NCBI GenBank assembly: GCA_001643675.2
Contig: LSRY02000012.1
Coordinates: forward strand, 1,054,001-1,118,000
Reading direction: 5' to 3'
DNA length: 64,000 bases
Source of the DNA: Monocercomonoides exilis PA203
Lineage: Eukaryota; Protista; Preaxostyla
The notes beneath the pieces were generated by a model, which saw only the letters and a program-made list of their open reading frames with translations, was not told where the DNA came from and did not search any database. Positions 37,998 through 53,233 of the stretch are shown here, one piece after another. Numbering within the stretch: the first letter of the stretch is position 1; each line of letters opens with the position of its first letter. The translations under genes and the position numbers were made by a program.

Positions 37998-38071
37998 TGT
38001 CACGATCCGGGATCGAACCGGAGACCTCATGCGTGTGAAGCATATGTGATAACCAACTACACCATCGTGAC
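37998..38071 (-). tRNA. tRNA-Val (anticodon CAC)
   Basis: Reverse complement GTCACGATGGTGTAGTTGGTTATCACATATGCTTCACACGCATGAGGTCTCCGGTTCGATCCCGGATCGTGACA folds as a cloverleaf. It has acceptor stem GTCACGA/TCGTGAC, anticodon loop TT-CAC-AC and T-loop TTCGATC. Confidence 0.95.
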
Positions 38072-38078
38072 TTGTCGG

Positions 38079-38782
38079 TAGTCGGGGTGGAAACCCGAGC
38101 CAGGGAGGAAACCCGAGCCAGTGATCTTTTTTCGAATATTTTTCATTTTTTTCATTGATGAACAATTTTAAAAAAACGAAATAATTTCACATTATAATAC
38201 ATGTGAATATGCTGGTATGCATGTGGTTTTCGTGTTTCTTTGTTGAATGTATCTATGGAAAAAAAATTATTTTTGATCAAAAAATTTTTTCAGTGAAAAT
38301 TTTTACTAATTTTGAAGAAGAAAAAATTTCACATTTTGTCATCATTTTTGTATATTACACACACATACAATTCATTTACGCGTGTTTTCAATTTTCTTCA
38401 GTGGCTGAATGAGAAATAAAAAATTTTCTGTGTAATAAATTCGAATTTTCACACAGCCACTGAAGAAAATTGAAAACACGCGTAAATGAATTGTATGTGT
38501 GTGTAATATACAAAAATGATGACAAAATGTGAAATTTTTTCTTCTTCAAAATTAGTAAAAATTTTCACTGAAAAAATTTTTTGATCAAAAATAATTTTTT
38601 TTCCATAGATACATTCAACAAAGAAACACGAAAACCACATGCATACCAGCATATTCACATGTATTATAATGTGAAATTATTTCGTTTTTTTAAAATTGTT
38701 CATCAATGAAAAAAATGAAAAATATTCGAAAAAAGATCACTGGCTCGGGTTTCCTCCCTGGCTCGGGTTTCCACCCCGACTA
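38079..38782. mobile_element. 704-bp fold-back palindrome (329-bp arms, 46-bp spacer), probable non-autonomous TIR element/MITE with TA ends
   Basis: 38079-38407 is the reverse complement of 38454-38782. TA occurs at both ends. The subterminal direct repeat GGAAACCCGAGCCAG occurs twice (period 18) in each arm. Mirror-image 69-aa ORFs in the track confirm arm identity. Confidence 0.8.
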
Positions 38783-38999: not shown

Positions 39000-40410
39000 C
39001 ATCAGATTTTTTTTGATCAATTTTTCAATTCAAATATCTAATCATTGCATTGAATGATTCATTGGCCTCAGTAAAAGAAAGAGTTTGATGTCTGCTGAAG
39101 CTGCTGGTGGTTCTGGAACTGACGAATTGTGTGAGTGATGTACAAATGTGCATTGGAAGATGGAAAGTATGTTGGAAATGATTTGATGATGTTGTAGAAG
39201 ACATGGGAAACATGGTTTCCATTCGTTCGCAAGGACAATTGAGAAGAAGGAAAGAAGAAGGAGAAGATTATGATGATGATGATGATGATGAGGCAGTGGA
39301 AATGATAGAACCATCCTTATTGGCATGTCTGAAGGTGAAGTCGAACCAAACGAAAAGGAGTCTGCAGTGTTTTCAGAAGAAGACTCTGTAAAAGAAGTTT
39401 TACCAACATTTATAGCACTGCCAGCCAGGCATTTGGTGTGTCCAAACATAAACATGAACATTGTCAACATCAATTGAAGTGACTGTGTTTCTTCTGCAAT
39501 TAGCGCTCAATTATATGAAATGATGTTGAAGCAGAGAAATCTTTGTTTAAAGATGAATTTCCACAACGTTTTCCTGTCTGTTCAGCTGAAGATGGAATTA
39601 TGAGTTGCTTCTTCGCATTCCTTGCCTTGTCAACTGGTTTGAGCTGGAATAACATGCAAAAAGAAAAAATGCTCTTCAAAAGTGCAGTCGTTTTGACTCT
39701 GAAGCAAGTAGCTTTTAAATGGAATGCATTAGGCTTTACAGGTAGAAATCAGCTTTCCCTTCCTCTTCTTCCATCTTTTCTCTATTTTTTATTTCATTAA
39801 TTTTTGTTTGTATGTGAAATTCATATAAATCTTGTTTCAATGCTCTTTCGCTCGCTTTTGTCTGCATTTCCCGAAAGGAACAGAATATCACTTTATGCGA
39901 GAAATGAGTTGTCACTCTTGTTGAAATAATTGAAAAAGTGGACATAAAGAAAGATGAATTAGGTGAAGATTGTGAAGAAGAAGGAGAAGAAGGAGAAGAA
40001 GGAGAAGAAGGAGAAGAAGGAGAAGAAGGAGAAGAAGGAGAAGAAGGAGAAGAAGGAGAAGAAGGAGAAGAAGGAGAAGAAGGAGAAGAAGGAGAAGAAG
40101 GAGAAGAAGGAGAAGAAGGAGAAGAAGGAGAAGAAGGAGAAGAAGGAGAAGAAGGAGAAGAAGGAGAAGAAGGAGAAGAAGGAGAAGATGAAGGTGAAGA
40201 AGGTGAATACAAAAACGATGAATTGTGATACCGTATCCAAAAGTGAAGTTTCGAAGGGTTCTTCAAAACACACTGAAATTTGTGAGAATGTAATGGAAAG
40301 TGCGATGCAGCAAACAAACGGAAAAGAAAAAGAAGAAGAAGAAAAGAAAAAGAAAAAGAAAAAGAAAAAGAAAAAGAAGATGAGTTGGCTGGTAAAATGT
40401 TGTTGATGTT
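39000..40410 (+). pseudogene. Decayed acidic protein-coding remnant
   Basis: Short coding-like fragments (RRRKEEGEDYDDDDDDEAVEMIEPSLLACL; IKKDELGEDCEEE) are broken by stops and frameshifts. No intact gene model found. Confidence 0.3.
39977..40183. repeat. Perfect 9-bp tandem repeat (GAAGAAGGA)x23
   Basis: Directly visible in the sequence. Confidence 0.95.
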
Positions 40411-40781: not shown

Positions 40782-42281
40782 TTACAAATGCACAAATAAT
40801 ACAGATGAGCCTTCTGATGGAATGTCATTTTCCGTAATGCTCGAAAAATATGGCATCAATTCATGAAAGCTTGTGGTGATATCTTCGTATCCTTCTTCTT
40901 CTATCTTATCAAACGCTTTCCTTTTGGTTGCCTTTCTTTTCGCCTCGTCAGCTTCATCTTCCTCCCCTTCTTCCAATCGCCATGAAATCGCAATAAAAAA
41001 TGACAAGCATTCACAAGTTGCTTTGTCGTTCAACGTTGGCTGCTGAATCTCTTCCAAAATTACACCAACTGCTTCATTCTCCAGCAAGCCATCAATTTTC
41101 AATGCTCTGCTTATCGCTGCATTTCTCAATGAATAAATGCACTGATTGCGAATTTCCCTGTGATTATCCTTTGCTACTCGAAACACTTGAACAATGCTCC
41201 TGATGAGCTTAGCATATTCTTTACTTCTCAATCTGCATGATTCAATGTAAGGATTAAGTTTTTGGATCCATCTCTCTGATATATTTACATATTTCGTTTC
41301 TTCTCTGCTCATTTCCTCTTCTTTCTTCTTCCAATCCACACATTTCATCAGATCTTCTAGTTCTCTTGTCGCCTCTCTCGCAAAATGTAGCTCATTCTCA
41401 ATTACACTTTCCAAATCTTCATTGAAGAAAAATCGGTTTATGAAAAATCGCCAAGCCGATAGATATGCAAGATGAGTGAGATTTCGGTGTTTCTGATGAT
41501 TCCTGACAATCTCTGTAATTTCATTCAAATATTGTTTTCTTTCAATTTCCTATTTTTCAATTTGCAAATTATTCAATGAGCCAAACAAAGCAACTTAATA
41601 AATCAAGGAATAAATTAATCAAACTTTCCATATACCAATGTTGCTCAAAGCCAGCAAAGCCATTTCCACTTCTTTTTGAACTTCTTCGCTTTCCTCTTTA
41701 TTCAACGCAGCTTTCAGGAGACATAGCACGCAGATTGAACGCAATTCTGGTGGGATGTTGTAACTTAGTGAAATATAGCATTTACAAAGATCAACAAATA
41801 TTTTTTCATTCTTTTCTTCTTTTTTGTGTTCTTCTTCAATAATTATCTCCCCAACCTTTTTCTTCAAGGAAGAATTTTCAAAACAATTAATACATGCACA
41901 TTTCAGCACATTGAAATATCCAACATGTTTCAACATCAAAATTGAATCTTTCAAATATATTTTCCTTTCTTCAATCATTCTGCATATTTTGTCGAATAGC
42001 TCTGTCGTGAAGACAGATTTGAATTCCTTTTCATCCATCTCTTCCATTGCTTCATTCATTTCAAGGATTTTCTGTTTCTGTTCTTCCTTATTACAGCGTT
42101 CAAGGTCAGAAAACAATTCTTTAATAAAAAAATAATAGAAAAAATAGCAATAAATAAGAATTCAAACATAACCATATCTGCAAACCTGTGAACTTTTTTG
42201 TGTTGACTGTCTCCTATGTTTTTGAAAAAGCATTGCAGGCAGAAAACAGCAACATTTTTGCCATTCACATTGAAAGTTCAT
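40782..42281 (-). CDS. Lineage-specific helical family protein, copy A (probably 4 exons)
   Basis: Exon LFSDLERC..EVEMALLALSNIGIWK splices (intron 41550-41624, phase 0) to EIERKQYLNEITEI..EEEGYED..FVHL*. Two upstream mini-exons give MNFQFNTKKFTE (tentative). Confidence 0.75.
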
Positions 42282-42300
42282 ATATTTGGATAGAAGAAAA
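41635..42300 (-). repeat. Shared 5' tract, copy A (666 bp)
   Basis: Matches 49937-50602 at a constant offset of 8302. Only two substitutions were seen (41660 and 42284). Confidence 0.9.
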
Positions 42301-42599
42301 CAAACGAATAAAAAATCACAAAATAATCACAAAAATCTATGAATTCACGCCATATTTCTGTATACAAGCACTTTGAGAAGGTTCTATAAAGAAAAGAAAC
42401 GTTTTATTTCTTTGTTGGTTTGTTGTTATGGATGTTCTGATCGAATTGTAGTATTTGAACTGAAAAATCGATTGGCAAAATGAGAAATGTGTGAATAAAT
42501 ATTAACTACGGAAGTAGAGATATTATTTCATGAGGTTGCAGAAGACAATTTTGGCAATGCATTGATTTTGAAATTCCATCTGATAATTTTTGAAATTAG

Positions 42600-45500
42600 G
42601 TGGCCAAGGTAACACAACGATTTCATTATTGAATTCAAACAAATTAATAGTTACACTTTATAATGTTCTATTTATTTTCAAGATATTTCCATCTATCGTC
42701 TTCTCAAAGTCAGCAATTTGATAAATTATACAAATGCGGAAGTCTTTAATCATTCAGAGCAGTATTTTGTGTTTGGAAAGAAAGCATGTGAGGCAACCGT
42801 TCATGTGGCAGGCATTCGAAGGTATTTGAGCCTGTTCAATCTTAATGAAACTTGTAACTCCTTGAGATACTGTGGAAGAGTTTGAAAAGAAGAATTGGAT
42901 TTCACTTTTTGTAGAAATGTGGAAATTAATCCATTTTGGTGAAGAATGGATGAACATCAATTCTGCTTGAATGTCTGTTGAAATCGAATTAATAAAGAAA
43001 AATATTGGATTTGATTCAGTATTATTGGAGAAAACGGACATTGCAGACACAAAAAAATTATTGAAAAATGATCGATAAATTTGTTTTGAAGGTTTGCTAT
43101 GTTTTTATATTTTTTTAGAATTTTTTCTATTGATTTTCTGATGCAGGCCGTCAAAAAGCGAGGGATTGGATAGCTTTGAAGAAAAAGAAGAAAAGAAGGG
43201 AAGAAAAAGGCAAAAAATACAAAGATTGATGGAATAAAAGATATAACAGTGAATTTGATCTCTGGTTTTCTGGCAAAAAGTTATTTTTGAGGAAAGATGA
43301 TTTGAATGAAAGAAGAGAAGTGAAAAAGTTGTGTTACGAATGAAAAAGAAACAGAAAAGATGGAAAATCACATGACCCCAGTTTTTTATGGAAAGGAGAG
43401 GATTGAGTTGAATGAGCGAGGAATTTGTAGGATCTAGTTTTATAGAAGAATATTCATGATTAAAAAAGAGGAAGCTTGATGGAGATTAATTTAGAAAACT
43501 TTTCTGTTGCATTTATTGTCATTTTTCTTCGCAATTCCAAACCTCCAATTATTTCATTCAATTCATTGTCGTAGTCTTCTTCTTCTTCTTATGTATCTAC
43601 AATGTTTCACACAATAACAACAACTTCTTCTTCTTCCGATTGAATTTCTTCATATTCTGCATCACCATCGAGATTATTTGAGAGAAGAAATGGAAATGAA
43701 GAATCTTGCTTGAGCAATGATGTTTTATACAGAAGATGAAAATGAATATTTTTACGAAAGGGAAGTAAAGGCAGGCAAGAAAACTCGCATTAAGCTTGTG
43801 AAAGTTTCTTTCATCTGGAATTGGAGCTTTGCAAACTCCAGATATCGAGGATAGAATGACAAACATTTTATGGAATCTATCTGATACATCATGGCTTCTG
43901 CGGGATTTTTGTTTGAATCAACAGAATGAGCAGATAACAGCAATTACCACATTCTCCATTTTTGAAATGAACTTTTCATATGCCTCTCATTTAATACATC
44001 TGATGTTCGACCAGAACGATAATTCATTCAAAATTAGCATCGCTTCTTCATCTTCTAATTTCATCTCAACTTTTGAAGAAACCCTATTCCATCTTTTCCC
44101 ATTGCTCGAGAACGGCGAGCTTTCGCGACTGGTTGATCTTTCTGATCAGAATATGGATGTTGTGTATGTGTCGTAGGTGGAGCTGTTGCCTGATACGAAA
44201 GCCTGCCTCAAAAAGCTTCTTGTGTCCAGGGGTAGCACAGAAGTAGTCTCTTCGTTCAGAGCCTTTGTCTTCTTCGCCTTCATCAACTGGAGCACACTCC
44301 GGTCTGCTTCGTCATTCCGGAGGCGGAGAAGAGAAGAGAAGAAGGCAGCAGGATATTAAAAGCCATCATCATCATCATCTTCTTCTTCTTCTTTTGCTTC
44401 CAACAGCCTTTTTTGGCTATTTTTTCGAATTCGTCTTCTTCCTTTTTTGGAATGCAGAATGAGATAGAATTGGGTGTGCTTAAACAAAATCCATTCTTTT
44501 TTGGCATTGTTGATGAAATATCGTTTTTGAAGGTGATTTTTGGAAAATATTCATGATCTGTGCCAAAGCCCAGATGAATGAAACAAGGGATGGTGGCAAC
44601 CGATTAAGGAAGTAACATGGAAAAGAAAAGAAATCCACCAATGATTCATCAGTCCAACCAAAAAAGAAAGACAGGTTACTTCATGGAACATTGAATGAAA
44701 CTCTTTCTTTTTCTTCATTGAGTTTCTATTAAGTGATTCATCAACATGCTAATATTGCACAACTGTTTTCCTTGTGGAAACAATAAGATCACTTTTGTTT
44801 GTGGGGCATTCAAAGTAGAGGGCAGATGGTGTATATTAGATGCCATTTGCATCTTCTTCTTCATTGTCTTCTTCATTCTTCATTGTGTATTTAATCATTT
44901 CAGCAACATCTTCATTTTTACGCCTTAACATTTCATTTATCTGTAGTCACTCAAATGCAAATATCTCATTCTCCATCTTTTTCACAGAGAAATTATCATT
45001 TTCCTCGAAATATTCCTTTTTTCCCAATAATTTAGCAACTCATCAATCAACGTAGATGAAAAACATAATTATTTATTTAATTTTATTTTATTATATTTTA
45101 TTTTATTTTATTTTATTTTATTTTATTTTATTTTATTTTATTTTATTTTATTTTATTTTATTTTATTTTATTTTATTTTATTTTATTTTATTTTATTTTT
45201 ATTTTATTTTATTTTATTTTATTTTATTTTATTTTATTTTATTTTATTTTATTTTATTTTATTTTATTTTATTTTATTTTATTTTATTTTATTTTATTTT
45301 ATTTTATTTTATTTTATTTTATTTTATTTTATTTTATTTTATTTTATTTTATTTTATTTTATTATTATTATTATTATTATTATTTTGTCCTTCTCACCTT
45401 CTCACTTCCATCATCATCAAGGGAAGAGGATTCATTTCAATTGTGAGCTATTCTTTCATCCACTTTTGAATGGATCTGTTTCATAGACTGTGAATGCTGC

Positions 45501-47050
45501 AACAACTTTCATTAATTTTTGGAAACAGATTCGTTAAGTATGATTAAGAAAACAAAAGCCTGTAAATTGAATGTTTTTTCAACCAGTTTTGAGAATTTTA
45601 TTTCTTCGTTTTCATGCCTTGTGTACATTTTATTTTCAAAGTGATTATTAAACAAGGCACATTTGGAGGAGTAACAGAAAGAATGATAGAAAGAGAAAGT
45701 GATCTTTTGTCGCTGAGAAGATACAATACATCAGCCATTCACCAAAAGAAAATATCATATTTCTTCAAATTCATTTTCATCTCACAAATCCGCTTTTCGT
45801 TCACGGGGTTTTGATTTCTCTTCTTCAATTTTCTGAAGTCATATGAAACTTGGAAAAGCAAGAAAGGAAACTAAAAAAGCACAAAACTGTTCGAAAGACA
45901 GACGAGAGGCTGTTGGAGACGATGAATGAATGCGTGCATATGCGTTTCTTTCATGAAATTTTTGAGTGGGTATATCATTTGAGGAAAACATTTGAAGAGA
46001 GAAAAAAGATGAAGAAGAAGCAGAAGAAGAAAATGAAGAAATGTTGAATGGATTCTAATTTCATAACAGCCAACATCAGCAACGGACAGCAGTTTCATTG
46101 AGTGTTGCAATATGAGAATTTTAAGGCAATTTAAACAACAAATTCTCAAAAACGAAAAAGGTCTTCTTTTCATCAATCAAGTTAATAAAAAATATCTTCA
46201 ATGAAGAAATCGGAGGAGAATAAGAAGAAACCATATAATCTTCAAAAATACTGCATGAAATGGATTGTTCTTGAAAATGAGCTCAACATGAAAAAAGCTG
46301 TTCATTGGAATGGAAACAAAAAGATATAAAATAAAAATAATTGGTTTTGCATTGATTATTAAGATTCCTCAAAAGTACACACCTGCCCTCCGTATCGCAA
46401 ATACAGAGATTATTCAATCACTGTGCTGTCAATCTCCTTTTTCATTATTTCTCAGTGCTCCTTTCTCCATCATCCTTTATTCCCACATAAATATCCTGCT
46501 TTTGATGTTGTCATGCACTTTTTTTCTGATAAAAATATTTGGCATTTTATCTTTCTTTCCAAGTGCTTTCTAATCGTTGACATTCTTCTTTTTCCTCTCA
46601 TCCATATGCTTTGAAATCGAATCTGCTTTTCCCCTGTTCAGGATGAATACAAAATATATGCAATTCCCATCTGCCGATTGTATCTTGGCATCCAGCACTC
46701 TTCTGATATTCTCCTCAGAAAAACATAAGAATGGCCATTCATATAATTTATCAGATTCTTGCACTCTGAGAAGGCCACAGATGGAAACATATTTAAAATG
46801 AACAAGAACAATAAAAAATGCAATCATCATAATATCATATATTTTGGAAAATGAATTTCCTTCAAAGATGCATTTCATAAAAATCATCTCGCTCAATTTC
46901 AAAATTGATGCATCTCCACCGTTGTTGGTGTTTTCCCAGGAAATAATATTTCTTGTTCCACATGTGATGTTCACTTCCCGTTCCATCATAATATGAATGA
47001 ACATTCGGTTTGAAAGAAAATAACTCGATCATTTTATCCATAATGAATAA
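42600..47050. pseudogene. Mosaic of decayed coding fragments on both strands, no intact gene
   Basis: Many 60-145 aa ORFs with coding-like composition are interrupted by frequent stops. No recognisable domain. Confidence 0.25.
45078..45361. repeat. (TTTTA)n microsatellite, ~55 units, followed by (TTA)n
   Basis: Directly visible in the sequence. Confidence 0.95.
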
Positions 47051-47167
47051 AGAAAAATTGTAAAAACTTTGTTTTTTTCATCATTCATTGTCAAAAACAC
47101 AAATGCAAAAAATGACGGTATGAACACTCATATTTTAAAGCTTTTTTGAGATTGTATTTGTGATGTG

Positions 47168-47817
47168 TTTCTTCTATCCAAACATATGAACTTTCAATGT
47201 GAATGGCAAAAATGTTGCTGTTTTCTGCCTGCAATGCTTTTTCAAAAACATAGGAGACAGTCAACACAAAAAAGTTCACAGGTTTGCAGATATGGTTATG
47301 TTTGAATTCTTATTTATTGCTATTTTTTCTATTATTTTTTTATTAAAGAATTGTTTTCTGACCTTGAACGCTGTAATAAGGAAGAACAGAAACAGAAAAT
47401 CCTTGAAATGAATGAAGCAATGGAAGAGATGGATGAAAAGGAATTCAAATCTGTCTTCACGACAGAGCTATTCGACAAAATATGCAGAATGATTGAAGAA
47501 AGGAAAATATATTTGAAAGATTCAATTTTGATGTTGAAACATGTTGGATATTTCAATGTGCTGAAATGTGCATGTATTAATTGTTTTGAAAATTCTTCCT
47601 TGAAGAAAAAGGTTGGGGAGATAATTATTGAAGAAGAACACAAAAAAGAAGAAAAGAATGAAAAAATATTTGTTGATCTTTGTAAATGCTATATTTCACT
47701 AAGTTACAACATCCCACCAGAATTGCGTTCAATCTGCGTGCTATGTCTCCTGAAAGCTGCGTTGAATAAAGAGGAAAGCGAAGAAGTTCAAAAAGAAGTG
47801 GAAATGACTTTGCTGGC
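47168..47817 (+). repeat. Shared 5' tract, copy B (650 bp, inverted relative to A and C)
   Basis: Reverse complement of 41650-42299 (constant coordinate sum 89467). Sense and antisense ORF translations in the track match across the copies. Confidence 0.9.
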
Positions 47818-48652
47818 GTTGAGCAATATTACGATGTGGAAGGTCAAATTTATTTTTTTTCATGTTTTTGAATTGGATTTTTTTTTTTATCTTTTTCTTT
47901 TTTAGAATATACCAGAAGAATTATTTTTGAGTGAGATCAAAGAGATCATCAAATATCATCAAGATCATCACAATCTGACACGACTTGCTTTCCAATCTGC
48001 TTGGCAGTTTTTAACAAGCAGATTACTTTTCATAAAGAAATTGGAAACAGTTATTTTAAATGAGCTTCATTTTGTGGGGGAGGCAAGAAGAGAATTGGAA
48101 GAGTCGATAAGACATATTGATTGGAAGGGAAAAGGAGAGGAAAAAGAAAAGAATAGAATTGAAAGGAAAGAAGAAATTCTTTTGGTGAGGTGGCTCCGAA
48201 TGTTGGGGCGTTTTTTTGTCAAATGCAAATTGTGGAATGAAGAATCTACCGAACTTTTCAGCAGTATTGTTCAGGTATTTGGAGTAGCAAAGGGTAATTA
48301 CAGTGAAATATGCGAGGAATGCATTCGATCATTTATTGCAGCAGTTAAAAATAGAGTTGTGATACTTGATTCCTTGCTGAAAATTGGTGCTATTGATGCT
48401 GCTTTTGAGGAGATTCCAAAATCAACAATCAAAGTCCAAATGATATATTATTGCTTGAAATTTTTTATTGAAATTTCAAGGCGAATAAAAGAAGAAAAGG
48501 AAAGAAAAGATCTGAAAAGGAAGGTGTTTGACAAATTGGAAGAAGAAGGATATGAAGATATCATCATCGGATTGTGCTATTGTATGTATAAATGGGAGTT
48601 TGGCTATCTTCATTTGATTAAGAATTGTCCAGATTATTTTGTGTATTTGTAG
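47186..48652 (+). CDS. Lineage-specific helical family protein, copy B (probably 4 exons)
   Basis: Same 5' exons as copy A. Intron 47843-47905 (phase 0) leads to NIPEELFLSEIKEII..EEEGYEDII..DYFVYL*. Confidence 0.75.
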
Positions 48653-49079
48653 TTTATCTGATTTCTTTCATTCACTTCATCTTTTTGCATTTCCATTTTA
48701 TTATTTTTTGTGCAGAACACTCATTCGCTTGAGAAATAAAGGAATTAAGATTTGCAAAAATAGATGAAAGTGTTTTCTCAAAGAATATCAAGTGTTTTCG
48801 AGAAAAATGAACATATTTAAAAAAGAATAAAATTAAAAATTAGAAAAAAAAAATCTATCAGAAAATGAATCAATCTTGTTGAATTATTCTCTTGTTATGA
48901 AAAAAATATAACAACTTCAAAAAAATTATCAAATATTAGTGAAACTCATTCAATGAAAAATATCTGGACTTTCAAATCTGAATTTTTTAAAGCAATAGAA
49001 TGGAGGATAAGGAAAATAGGTTGGCCATTTCACAGTTCATCTAATTTTTGAGTTATAAAGTGAAATGCATTTCAATTCC

Positions 49080-50583
49080 TCATATATTCACAAAATAATC
49101 GGAAATATTCAACGACAATGATATCTTAAAAAAATAATTTCTGTTTAAAAAATTCAATCTTTCATAAAAAGTTGCGATTGCATCTTCGTATCCTTCTTCT
49201 TCCATCTTTTCAGATATCTCTTTTTTTGTTGATTTTCTTTTCTCTTCTTCCATTTCATCTATCTTCTTTCCTTTCAACCGCTTCGAAATATTCATTAAAA
49301 ATGTAAATCTTTCTTGTTCTATTTTGTCATTCATTGTTGGTCTCCGCATATCCTCCAAAATTTCATCAATTGCTCCTCCTTTCAACAAGACATCAACTGT
49401 CACGGATTCATTTCTCGCTGCTGCTTCGAACAAATGAATGCATTGATCGCAAATTTCTATGTAAATATCACTTGCTATTCGATGCATCTGAGCAATGCAG
49501 ATCACAAGTCCAGAACATTATTCATTCCACAATTCGCACGAGAAAAAAAAGACCACAATGTTTGAATATGTCTCATTAAAGCAAATTCTTCTTCCGTTTC
49601 TTTTCCTCTTTACTCACTTTTAATTCTCTTCCAATCAATATTTTTTATCAGTTCTTCCTGTTCTCTTGCAACTTCTCTTGCAAAATGCAGCTCATTCACA
49701 ATAACTATTTCCAAGTCTTTGTAGTTAAAAAATCTTTTGTTCAAAAACTCCCAAGCAGACTGATAGGCAAGGCTGGTGAGATTGCGATGTTCATAATGAT
49801 ATTTGATGATTTCCATGATTTCATAAACGTAAAGTTCTTGTGACACTTTCAATAAAAAAGGGAGAAATATCATAAATGAAGCTAAAATATTTCAATGCTA
49901 TCAAAAATGAAAGGAAATGTTCATGCCACAATCGGCCCAATGTTGCTCAAAGCCAGCAAAGTCATTTCCACTTCTTTTTGAACTTCTTCGCTTTCCTCTT
50001 TATTCAACGCAGCTTTCAGGAGACATAGCACGCAGATTGAACGCAATTCTGGTGGGATGTTGTAACTTAGTGAAATATAGCATTTACAAAGATCAACAAA
50101 TATTTTTTCATTCTTTTCTTCTTTTTTGTGTTCTTCTTCAATAATTATCTCCCCAACCTTTTTCTTCAAGGAAGAATTTTCAAAACAATTAATACATGCA
50201 CATTTCAGCACATTGAAATATCCAACATGTTTCAACATCAAAATTGAATCTTTCAAATATATTTTCCTTTCTTCAATCATTCTGCATATTTTGTCGAATA
50301 GCTCTGTCGTGAAGACAGATTTGAATTCCTTTTCATCCATCTCTTCCATTGCTTCATTCATTTCAAGGATTTTCTGTTTCTGTTCTTCCTTATTACAGCG
50401 TTCAAGGTCAGAAAACAATTCTTTAATAAAAAAATAATAGAAAAAATAGCAATAAATAAGAATTCAAACATAACCATATCTGCAAACCTGTGAACTTTTT
50501 TGTGTTGACTGTCTCCTATGTTTTTGAAAAAGCATTGCAGGCAGAAAACAGCAACATTTTTGCCATTCACATTGAAAGTTCAT
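49080..50583 (-). pseudogene. Lineage-specific helical family, copy C, disrupted last exon
   Basis: The 5' exons are identical to A and B. The last exon has TAA at 49612-49610 and 49520-49518 where paralogues have Glu, plus a frameshift near the A8 run at 49543-49550. The obvious last-intron donor and acceptor are out of phase. Confidence 0.7.
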
Positions 50584-50602
50584 ATGTTTGGATAGAAGAA
50601 AA
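49937..50602 (-). repeat. Shared 5' tract, copy C (666 bp)
   Basis: Direct repeat of 41635-42300. Confidence 0.9.
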
Positions 50603-51554
50603 TAAGTGATAAAGTTAAAACTCAAAGCAACCTTACAAATATCAGCATTCGTACCAACATATTAATATTAGACATTTTTCCAGTGATAATTGAGAAAAAT
50701 TATGCTTAATATTATCGGTTTATTGTTATGGATTCTTTGATCAGGGAATATTTATAACTGAGTTATCAATTTGCAAAACTTAAAATTGGAAAAGAAATGT
50801 CAACCTCAGTAATTAAAATGCTGATGAAACAGAACTTATCTGTCAGCCTGTGTTACGCCATGATGATTTTGTCTTTTCATTCGTCAATTCCTTATTTCTA
50901 TGTCAGAAATTTTGTTTTTTAATTTTGACCATCCGAAATTTTATAAAGGAGCTTTTGAAATTTATAGTCACTTTGGATTTGTTTCATTTTTCCATTTGGG
51001 GAAAAATAAGTGACTCCTAGCTTTTTAGTTGAAAAAAAATACACTTTTCATGAACTTTTTTATATCAAAAAACACAATAAAAATGGGTCCATTTTTTGAC
51101 GTTTATGAAATGTTGGAAATTTTTATGTTTTGACTTCAACGATGCCTATTCAAGGATATGAAAATCAAATTTATTTAGAAATCTGTGAATCTTCAAAAAA
51201 AAAAAAAAAATGAAAAGAAAAAAAAGAAAGAAAAGGAAAAAATTGTTTTGTGAAAATAATGATGGATATTTTCAAATACTGTATTTGGTGGTATTATCTC
51301 AACAATCGTTGACTGAACATTTTGACAATTGACTCCGTTTTATTCACTCCGTGTTTTCATTATTATGGAACACGCGCAAGCAATATAACCAGCTCCATCG
51401 AATGATGAAGATTACATTTTCAAATTGTTATGAAATTGGGAGATTCTAATACCTCCAGTTTTCTCCGAAAAGAAAAAGTGTTTATTACGTTATTCTGCAG
51501 AGTAAGATGTTTCATTTCTGTATGTCTGACAAGTTTGTGTTCATACAAGATATG

Positions 51555-51931
51555 CAGATATCGCATAAAATACCGGACATCGCACAAAATACCGGACAAG
51601 ATCGTTTGCTCAATAACCACTCAAAGAGAAAATCTGATAATATTCCTCCAAATATATCTCATTAACGCAAACTCATTTGGCATATCAAACTTCCATTTTC
51701 ATGAAGACTGAATATTGAAAAAATAATTTTTAAAATCTCGGAGAAATTTGATTTTGGGTTTCTTTGAGATTTTAAAAATTATTTTTTAAATATTCAGTCT
51801 TCATGAAAATGGAAGTTTGATATGCCAAATGAGTTTGCGTTAATGAGATATATTTGGAGGAATATTATCAGATTTTCTCTTTGAGTGGTTATTGAGAAAA
51901 CCCCATTGTCCGGTATTTTATGTAATATCTG
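51555..51931. mobile_element. Fold-back MITE-like palindrome with degenerate termini, related to 52450-52845
   Basis: 51609-51739 pairs with 51766-51896 (one mismatch seen). Outer AAAATACCGGACAA/TTGTCCGGTATTTT. Termini CAGATAT../..ATATCTG. The right arm lacks one of the two subterminal repeats. Confidence 0.75.
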
Positions 51932-52449
51932 TTTCATCAGTTCTCCAAGTATCTATTTATTTTTGAGAGAAGTTCTGATTCATCTGCAAAATACGACAAA
52001 ACATTAATAAATTAGGTTAAAACACAAGATACGACCGGTCACAAAATTGTCATATGTCACAGCTATCATGATACCACATTGTGCACATAAGTTTTTTTTT
52101 ATGCCTATTGTGTGCGGAAACTGTGAAATATGTTATTTACAATTTTCGTAAAATTCAAAAATCTTTTTCAATTTTGATTGAAACCAATGATTTTTTTCGG
52201 GTATTTATTTGTTAGCTTTTTTTATCGCTATTATATTGTTTGGGTTTTATCCAATATCAACTTGTTAGGGTGAAATTCTGTTGCATAAATTGCTCAATTT
52301 AATTAAATATAAAAATTATTTATCATTGATCAAAAAATGCTCTATTCAAATTGGGGACAAATTAAATTGAATATGTTCAAAGCATATTTGAATGCATTCT
52401 AGAAGAATTTAGATTATTAATCTGTTTATTTTGATTGTCGTTGAATATA

Positions 52450-52845
52450 CAGTTTGTGCAAAAAATACCGGACATCGCAAAAAATACCGGACAAGATCGA
52501 TATCTCAACAACCGCAAGAAGAAAAATTCTGATAATTTTCCTCAATATACATCTCGTCAACACAAAGTCACGTGCCATACCAGACTTTTAAAATCGCCTC
52601 ATTCGTACTCAGAGAAAATTATTTTTTATATTTCGGAGAAACTTGAAATCCTATTTCTCCGAAATATTAAAAATAGATTTCTCTGAGTACGAATGAGGCG
52701 ATTTTAAAAGTCTGGTATGGCACGTGACTTTGTGTTGACGAGATGTATATTGAGGAAAATTATCAGAATTTTTCTTCTTGCGGTTGTTGAGATATCGATC
52801 TTGTCCGGTATTTTTTGCGATGTCCGGTATTTTTTGCACAAACTG
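52450..52845. mobile_element. 396-bp palindromic MITE, Tc1/mariner(pogo)-type ends, TA target duplication
   Basis: TA|CAGTTTGTGC...GCACAAACTG|TA. The 192-bp arms (52450-52641 and 52654-52845) surround a 12-bp spacer. The subterminal repeat GCAAAAAATACCGGACA occurs twice (period 19). Confidence 0.85.
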
Positions 52846-53233
52846 TAATTGATGAAAAAAATATTTGATCAATACCAATTTACAGGGAAATAACAATTTG
52901 ATTCATTTGAAAATAAATGTTTCCGCATAAAATAAAGACATAATAACTTAACGAAACAGTTAACAATAACGTTATAATCACCCTCACAAATTTTTATTAA
53001 CGGTCGTATATTGTGCAATTACCATAAATTACACAGCTTTTAAATTAACCATTAAAAAATGTAAGTTAAGTCGAAATAAGCAAAAAAGGACTGTTGAATT
53101 ACCATTATTAAAAAATAAAAACAACAAAAAATAATTGCATTTTTTTTAATGTTTTAGTGCAGAACCAGTTATTATAAAGCAAATGCAAATGAAGTTTGAT
53201 TTTTTTATTGTTTGAGTATCAAAAAGATATACA

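Follow-up and report, generated by a model that had tools for sequence, protein, structure and literature searches.

Probable ectopic gene conversion among three clustered, distantly related paralogues of Monocercomonoides exilis

Introduction

How can three neighbouring genes carry one and the same 5′ stretch of about 650 bp when the sequence on both sides of it has diverged? The question is raised by a cluster of three genes, here called A, B and C, that lies in the window analysed in this work, the 64,000 nucleotides at positions 1054001-1118000 of contig C6 of the gut protist Monocercomonoides exilis. A first-pass annotation of this window proposed that a defined tract had been repeatedly overwritten by gene conversion, and that the resulting proteins, with identical N-terminal and variable C-terminal halves, might form a diversification system. 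Our analysis points to another answer: three clustered, distantly related paralogues have probably undergone non-allelic (ectopic) gene conversion, recently and on at least two occasions.

Results

Organization of the gene cluster

Coordinates of the three genes and of the tract that they share are given in Table 1. Gene B is inverted with respect to genes A and C, and the tract arms of B and C form an inverted pair 2.1 kb apart. In a comparison with NCBI proteins the last exon of gene A showed a 100% match to MONOS_17317, and the exon coordinates together with the ATG reproduce this annotated protein exactly. No annotated protein was found for gene B within the searched range of 136-434 amino acid residues. 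The last exon of gene C is interrupted by in-frame TAA codons at 49610-49612 and at 49518-49520, and its frame shifts close to a run of eight T (T8, 49543-49550); gene C is thus a pseudogene.

Table 1. Features of the three-gene cluster (positions within the window)
Feature	Position	Strand	Remarks
Tract copy A	41635-42299	-	exact core 41661-42283
Tract copy B	47168-47817	+	exact 650-bp match to C, inverted
Tract copy C	49937-50601	-	exact with B over 49952-50601; matches A to 49937
Gene A	40782-42299	-	includes tract; coding 40782-42264 = MONOS_17317, predicted ARM/HEAT-like protein of 430 aa
Gene A annotated ATG	42262-42264	-	requires GC-AG micro-intron 42214-42261
Gene A exon 1	42186-42213	-	
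Gene A intron 1	42119-42185	-	67 nt
Gene A exon 2	41625-42118	-	
Gene A intron 2	41550-41624	-	
Gene A exon 3	40782-41549	-	
Region upstream of A	42300-43300	-	non-coding, family-conserved but diverged, outside converted tract
Gene B	47168-48652	+	open frame
Gene B exon 1	47254-47281	+	
Gene B intron 1	47282-47348	+	
Gene B exon 2	47349-47842	+	
Gene B intron 2	47843-47905	+	
Gene B exon 3	47906-48652	+	
Gene C	49080-50601	-	pseudogene in last exon, 5′ tract intact

Extent and identity of the shared tract

The tract was defined by a repeat scan and a three-way MAFFT alignment, both of which confirmed what the first-pass annotation had noticed, namely three near-identical tracts at these positions with about two substitutions close to their edges. 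It is gap-free in all copies. The longest exact match is 650 bp between B and C (47168-47817 and 49952-50601) and 623 bp among all three copies (41661-42283 in A). Copy A differs from both B and C at two sites only: it has T instead of C at 42284, 16 nt inside one tract edge, and G instead of A at 41660, 26 nt inside the other. As reported by the repeat scan, the B-C pair is a 663-nt, 100% inverted match (47168-47830 and 49939-50601), and the A-B pair extends over 741 nt at 95%.

The step in identity is sharp. Each 50-nt window of the three-way alignment shows 100% identity throughout the approximately 650 columns of the tract; immediately beyond it the values are 40-66%, and along the last exon they are 55-80%. 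Over the remainder of the gene unit the three copies are different at 40-43% of aligned sites. On the upstream as on the downstream side, the flanks of the genes align at 55-66%, and the homologous but diverged upstream motif that the first-pass annotation had pointed out near 42417 and 50717 is present in the alignment. When the differences were shuffled 2000 times, the longest identical run was 42-50 nt; the runs of 623-650 bp actually observed correspond to a log10 P of about -133 to -154.

The tract comprises the leader, exon 1, intron 1 and all of exon 2 except its last 10 nt, and corresponds to residues 1-172 of the 430 aa. Divergence, previously placed at the last intron, therefore sets in before the end of exon 2. 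Two introns had been assigned to the tract: one is certain, and the other is a doubtful micro-intron. The certain one, intron 1 (67 nt), and the leader are identical among the copies, and dS is 0.012 in the tract vs 0.95 in the last exons of A and B. Because intron 1 and the synonymous sites are as identical as the remaining positions, protein-level (purifying) selection is not the cause of the identity.

Nearly common endpoints in all three copies had also been described. This holds for the 5′ edge, where the copies agree within 1-2 nt; at the 3′ edge B departs about 15 nt before A and C separate. Conserved blocks of about 15-20 nt are found at both edges (about 15 nt in the case of the 5′ block). 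Conservation across the family reaches 0.78-0.84 over the final 60 nt of the tract and sinks to 0.38-0.49 one window further on, so that the 3′ edge follows the best-conserved block of the gene. At the 5′ edge it declines from 0.69-0.75 to 0.59-0.61. No signature of GC-biased conversion was detected in the tract. Both its GC and GC3 equal the family mean, and there is thus no sign of long-running biased conversion.

Members of the family start in one of two ways, with an ATG immediately 5′ of CAG-GAGAC or with an ATG that is followed by a short GT...TAG intron. The shared cassette has neither of these forms; its sequence at this point is ACATAG-GAGAC, with TT where the splice donor would be. 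In gene A, use of the annotated Met consequently needs a GC-AG micro-intron, without which translation would start at Met30 instead. The start codon of the cassette is doubtful.

Could this identity have been produced by the assembly, with truly different copies homogenised by Canu read correction or by Pilon? The assembly was obtained from ONT reads (read N50 of 8.9 kb, about 150x coverage) using Canu, Nanopolish and ten rounds of Pilon; according to its authors, multi-copy regions were polished unevenly (PMC8767320). Gene A is a new model missing from the 454 annotation, and the search for annotated proteins described above revealed no independent assembly of B. Nevertheless, the read N50 far exceeds the tract length at this coverage, and whereas correction or polishing can blur differences of a few percent, it cannot convert a divergence of about 28% into identity with sharp edges beside flanks that are 40% diverged. 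Even if 100% were an overstatement, at most a few real differences would have been erased and the identity step would persist. Similar tracts also occur on other contigs (see below). We therefore regard an artefact of this kind as very unlikely.

A large family with a predicted alpha-solenoid fold

We searched the 82.3-Mb, 101-contig assembly with four different parts of the gene. Each DNA search produced 1,085-1,245 first-look candidates, and the 40-41 matches listed per search were all significant and nearly all 68-77% identical. The family comprises roughly 1,000 copies (more than 1,000 loci). All 85 of its relatives in protein databases come from Monocercomonoides exilis, and the family is restricted to this species. 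Both main exons are open in 50 of the 63 genes sampled, and dN/dS in the family is about 0.25-0.9, which argues that the majority of the copies are genuine genes on which purifying selection is relaxed.

A Pfam scan of the exon products brought no family to its cut-off, Arm and HEAT profiles included, and the database relatives contain no Pfam domains. The AlphaFold (AF2) model is an all-helical solenoid (pLDDT 85, pTM 0.82), for which Foldseek found matches to designed ARM proteins, Armc8 and importin-alpha (E 2e-4 to 4e-3, TMq 0.34-0.51); structure matches in the Atlas are likewise of the ARM/HEAT type (TM 0.54-0.62). The resemblance is modest, and the model suggests that the encoded protein is an Armadillo/HEAT alpha-solenoid.

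Homology among family members ends at the stop codon and, in a subset of loci, reaches 0.5-1 kb upstream of the gene. This conserved upstream part is non-coding. Its equivalent in B, at about 46000-47167, contains an ORF of 144 aa (46570-47004) that we considered as a divergent partner gene and rejected: its relatives at other loci are frame-fragmented, and since the counterparts are split across frames, the ORF belongs to a non-coding conserved repeat.

Kinship of the tract and of the remaining gene

Genome-wide, only three copies of the tract exist at 99% identity or above, and the next best of the matches listed is at 74%. The possibility that the tract is a mobile cassette or a foreign insert was rejected, as it is homologous to every family member over its full length (72-74%); this homology identifies it as the family's own 5′ region. 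An RNA-templated copy was rejected as well, intron 1 being part of the tract.

For each of the three 3′ exons, at least 40 loci elsewhere are more closely related (71-76%), a set in which the other two genes of the cluster do not appear. Pairwise 3′ p-distances within the cluster are 0.32-0.34 vs a family median of 0.31, which places them at the 65th-84th percentile of all pairs. The 3′ exons of the cluster are thus no closer to each other than those of random family members.

A comparison of trees for the 5′ exons and the last exons, as advised by the first-pass annotation, revealed discordance. In the 3′-exon tree, A belongs to a starred clade with L036, L037 and L040, and B to a starred clade with L052, L053, L055, L057, L060 and L062. 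In the 5′-exon tree the six relatives of B again form a clade (96/87), from which B is absent, and A, B and C form a 100/100 clade adjoining L005. Recovery of this clade without B indicates that the native 5′ part of B has been replaced, i.e. that B was a recipient.

An alternative view of these relationships is long-term concerted evolution, by which an ancient local triplet would have had its 5′ module continuously homogenised, the flanks having escaped and thereby set the edges. The near-coincidence of the edges in three copies agrees with it, and so does the separate branch, 0.2 in length, that the A/B/C tract occupies in the 5′ tree. Forcing A, B and C into one 3′-exon clade cost 44 units of lnL, and the AU test (p = 0.10) did not formally reject such a clade. 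However, the 3′ exon of B is much nearer to that of L052 (dS 0.43) than to that of A (dS 0.95). In the 5′ exon, by contrast, L052 is separated from the tract by a dS of 0.85, no less than a random family member. The coherent 5′ clade held by B's 3′ relatives without B also speaks against an ancient triplet, as do the GC and GC3 values at the family mean, and we consider this explanation unlikely.

The same data bear on the opposite scenario, a recent triplication of the whole gene after which upstream flanks and 3′ parts were replaced from dispersed members. At least six replacements would be required, each of which would leave a near-identical donor, and the best outside matches of the 3′ exons are at 73-76%. 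No outside donor above 74-76% was seen for either the tract or the 3′ exons among the matches listed. With no near-identical donors for the 3′ exons among these matches, flank replacement is excluded, and a triplication of this sort is extremely improbable.

Other tracts in the family

Mosaic structure was surveyed in 63 genes out of more than 1,000 loci; the sample is small and biased, as its members were picked for their resemblance to A, B or the tract. L038 and L042, which are inverted and about 16 kb apart on contig C18, have an exact tract of 917 bp in common that begins near the end of exon 2, continues through intron 2 and takes in nearly the whole of exon 3. This is the 3′ half of the gene, the mirror image of the situation in A, B and C. 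L009 and L015 (contig C91, inverted, about 28 kb apart) have in common an exact 219-bp tract confined to the leader, and other pairs in the family show patchy identity. Five discordant pairs among the 63 genes are alike in the 3′ and not in the 5′ part, and four are alike in the 5′ and not in the 3′ part. Exact or near-exact patches in this sample fall anywhere in the gene, and no fixed module boundaries recur across it; tract boundaries common to the family, for which the first-pass annotation had suggested a test, did not materialize, given the positions of the C18 and C91 tracts.

These observations also bear on the proposed constant-N / variable-C system, in which the N-module would be purposely kept identical and joined to variable C-terminal halves. 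One N-module in three genes with three different C-terminal halves, in a huge and fast-evolving family, speaks for such a system. Nonetheless, one of the three genes is a pseudogene, the cassette lacks the normal start of the family, and it is the constant part that was copied, the variable 3′ exons having no donor above 76% among the matches listed. Moreover, discordant pairs run both ways (five vs four) and include the exact 3′-half tract on C18. We conclude that a dedicated system is highly improbable.

Discussion

An intron lies within the tract, and the sequence on either side of it has stayed homologous while diverging; together these features point to gene conversion, a double exchange at the level of DNA. 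The earlier proposal of a tract overwritten by gene conversion is thus supported, with "repeatedly" reduced to at least two events. The three-way tract is very clean and very young, and it is ordinary in kind.

The most plausible course of ectopic conversion would begin when one paralogue is broken in its 5′ part and repaired by copying a neighbour on the same chromosome, 2-8 kb away, and without crossover. The stretch replaced would be about 620-650 bp, from the leader through exon 1 and intron 1 almost to the end of exon 2. As we infer the number and order of events, one of them would have involved B and C, which are inverted and have 650 bp in common, and another A with either B or C (at least 623 bp in common). 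B was a recipient, with A, C or a lost copy as candidate donors, among which the affinities of the upstream flanks give no signal. The copied strand probably re-anneals only at short family-conserved blocks, where diverged paralogues are still similar, and we propose that this confinement explains why the edges of separate events nearly coincide. The two edge differences of A may mean that its tract is slightly shorter, or that mismatches near the ends of the heteroduplex were repaired in patches. The process is blind to function: it refreshed the 5′ end of pseudogene C and spread a cassette with a doubtful start.

Several considerations count against ectopic conversion. Recombination between sequences of only about 72-75% identity is normally strongly suppressed. 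In addition, most of the mismatch-repair components have been reported from M. exilis (PMC6759080). Two events with nearly coincident edges also call for the proposed role of the conserved blocks, and the AU test leaves a 3′-exon clade of A, B and C formally unrejected (p = 0.10).

The inverted arrangement suggests one further possibility, that the identical tracts act as a recombination switch and that the N-module is kept identical to maintain it. If so, a crossover between B and C would flip a 2.1-kb segment with both last exons, one between A and B would flip a 4.8-kb segment with both upstream regions, and in both cases promoters would be joined anew to other C-terminal halves. Upstream-flank affinities, compared with the 3′-exon clades, gave no signal and hold no trace of a past flip. 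The chance that the tracts serve as a switch is slim.

We found no description of gene conversion in the oxymonad M. exilis in the literature searched. Interlocus conversion in clustered families is well known elsewhere, for example from the palindrome arms of the human Y chromosome, RHD/RHCE and globin duplicates. Like these, the M. exilis tract is a sharply bounded stretch of near-identity with diverged flanks that includes introns, its partners are near each other on one chromosome, often inverted in the known systems, and trees of tract and flanks disagree. It differs from them in that the partners are far more diverged (about 28%) and that three genes take part in one tract. In the trypanosome VSG, Borrelia vlsE and Anaplasma msp2 systems, it is the variable part that is copied, from silent donors into an expression site. 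While conversion among family members, and genes that can be read as a constant and a variable part, are features in common with these systems, in M. exilis the identical part is copied and no close donors of the variable parts appear among the matches listed; furthermore, no expression site is evident and one of the partners is dead.

The cluster reveals neither a new mechanism nor a diversification machine; this is ordinary conversion between nearby paralogues. Its value lies in being clean and datable, and in showing that paralogues of M. exilis with an identity of only about 72% can undergo ectopic conversion. It helps to explain the patchwork look of the huge families of this organism and of the "unclassified repeats" that make up 35% of its genome, and it cautions against whole-gene trees of the ARM/HEAT family, which are unreliable.

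Shared 3′-half tract in two further family members

An exact inverted match of 917 bp (C18:1206635-1207551 versus C18:1223582-1224498, assembly handle G000) joins L038 and L042, two members of the ARM/HEAT-like family that lie about 16 kb apart on C18, another contig of the same assembly. The match spans the 3′ half of the gene; the 5′ exons of the two loci are 23% diverged, and that of L042 contains stops. This tract is the mirror image of the 5′ tract in genes A, B and C.

Upstream repeat and start codons

About one third of the sampled family members (loci L004-L030) are preceded by a non-coding repeat, approximately 0.5-1 kb upstream of the gene, which is also present in the window ahead of genes A and B (see table). 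When loci L004, L010, L017 and L023 were compared with L011-L014, two solutions for the start codon were seen: an ATG immediately 5′ of CAG-GAGAC, or an ATG directly adjoined on its 3′ side by a roughly 45-nt intron that terminates with TAG. Neither was found in several otherwise open family copies.

Repeated elements around the three genes

The near-perfect palindrome in the window is directly adjoined by a tRNA-Val(CAC) gene. Upstream of gene C, at a distance of about 1 kb, are both copies of a second, hairpin-like element; they share 74-79% identity, with arms of 171 nt (93% complementary) and 194 nt (98% complementary) and a 12-nt spacer in each, and may represent a MITE-like or fragile palindromic repeat. 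The 9-bp array downstream of gene A reads as (EEG)n or (SSP)n.

Repeats and neighbouring features in the window
Feature	Position	Strand	Details
tRNA-Val(CAC) gene	37998-38071	-	
Near-perfect palindrome	38079-38782		337-nt arms, 99% complementary, 30 nt between arms
9-bp tandem array	39976-40188		perfect, 23.7 copies; downstream of gene A
Upstream non-coding repeat, gene A	42300-42800		
(TTTAT)61 array	45072-45381		inside 4.8-kb A-B spacer
Upstream non-coding repeat, gene B	about 46000-47167		
Hairpin-like element, two copies	51550-52850		each ~350-400 bp, 895 bp apart

Annotation and size of the family

One family member in the databases (P0080) is annotated as “TSET complex, TPLATE subunit B”, a label that is probably wrong. 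DNA searches returned about 1,100-1,250 candidate loci genome-wide for the ARM-like family, which would thus outnumber the 332 tyrosine kinases that the 2019 genome paper (PMC6759080) gives as the largest family.
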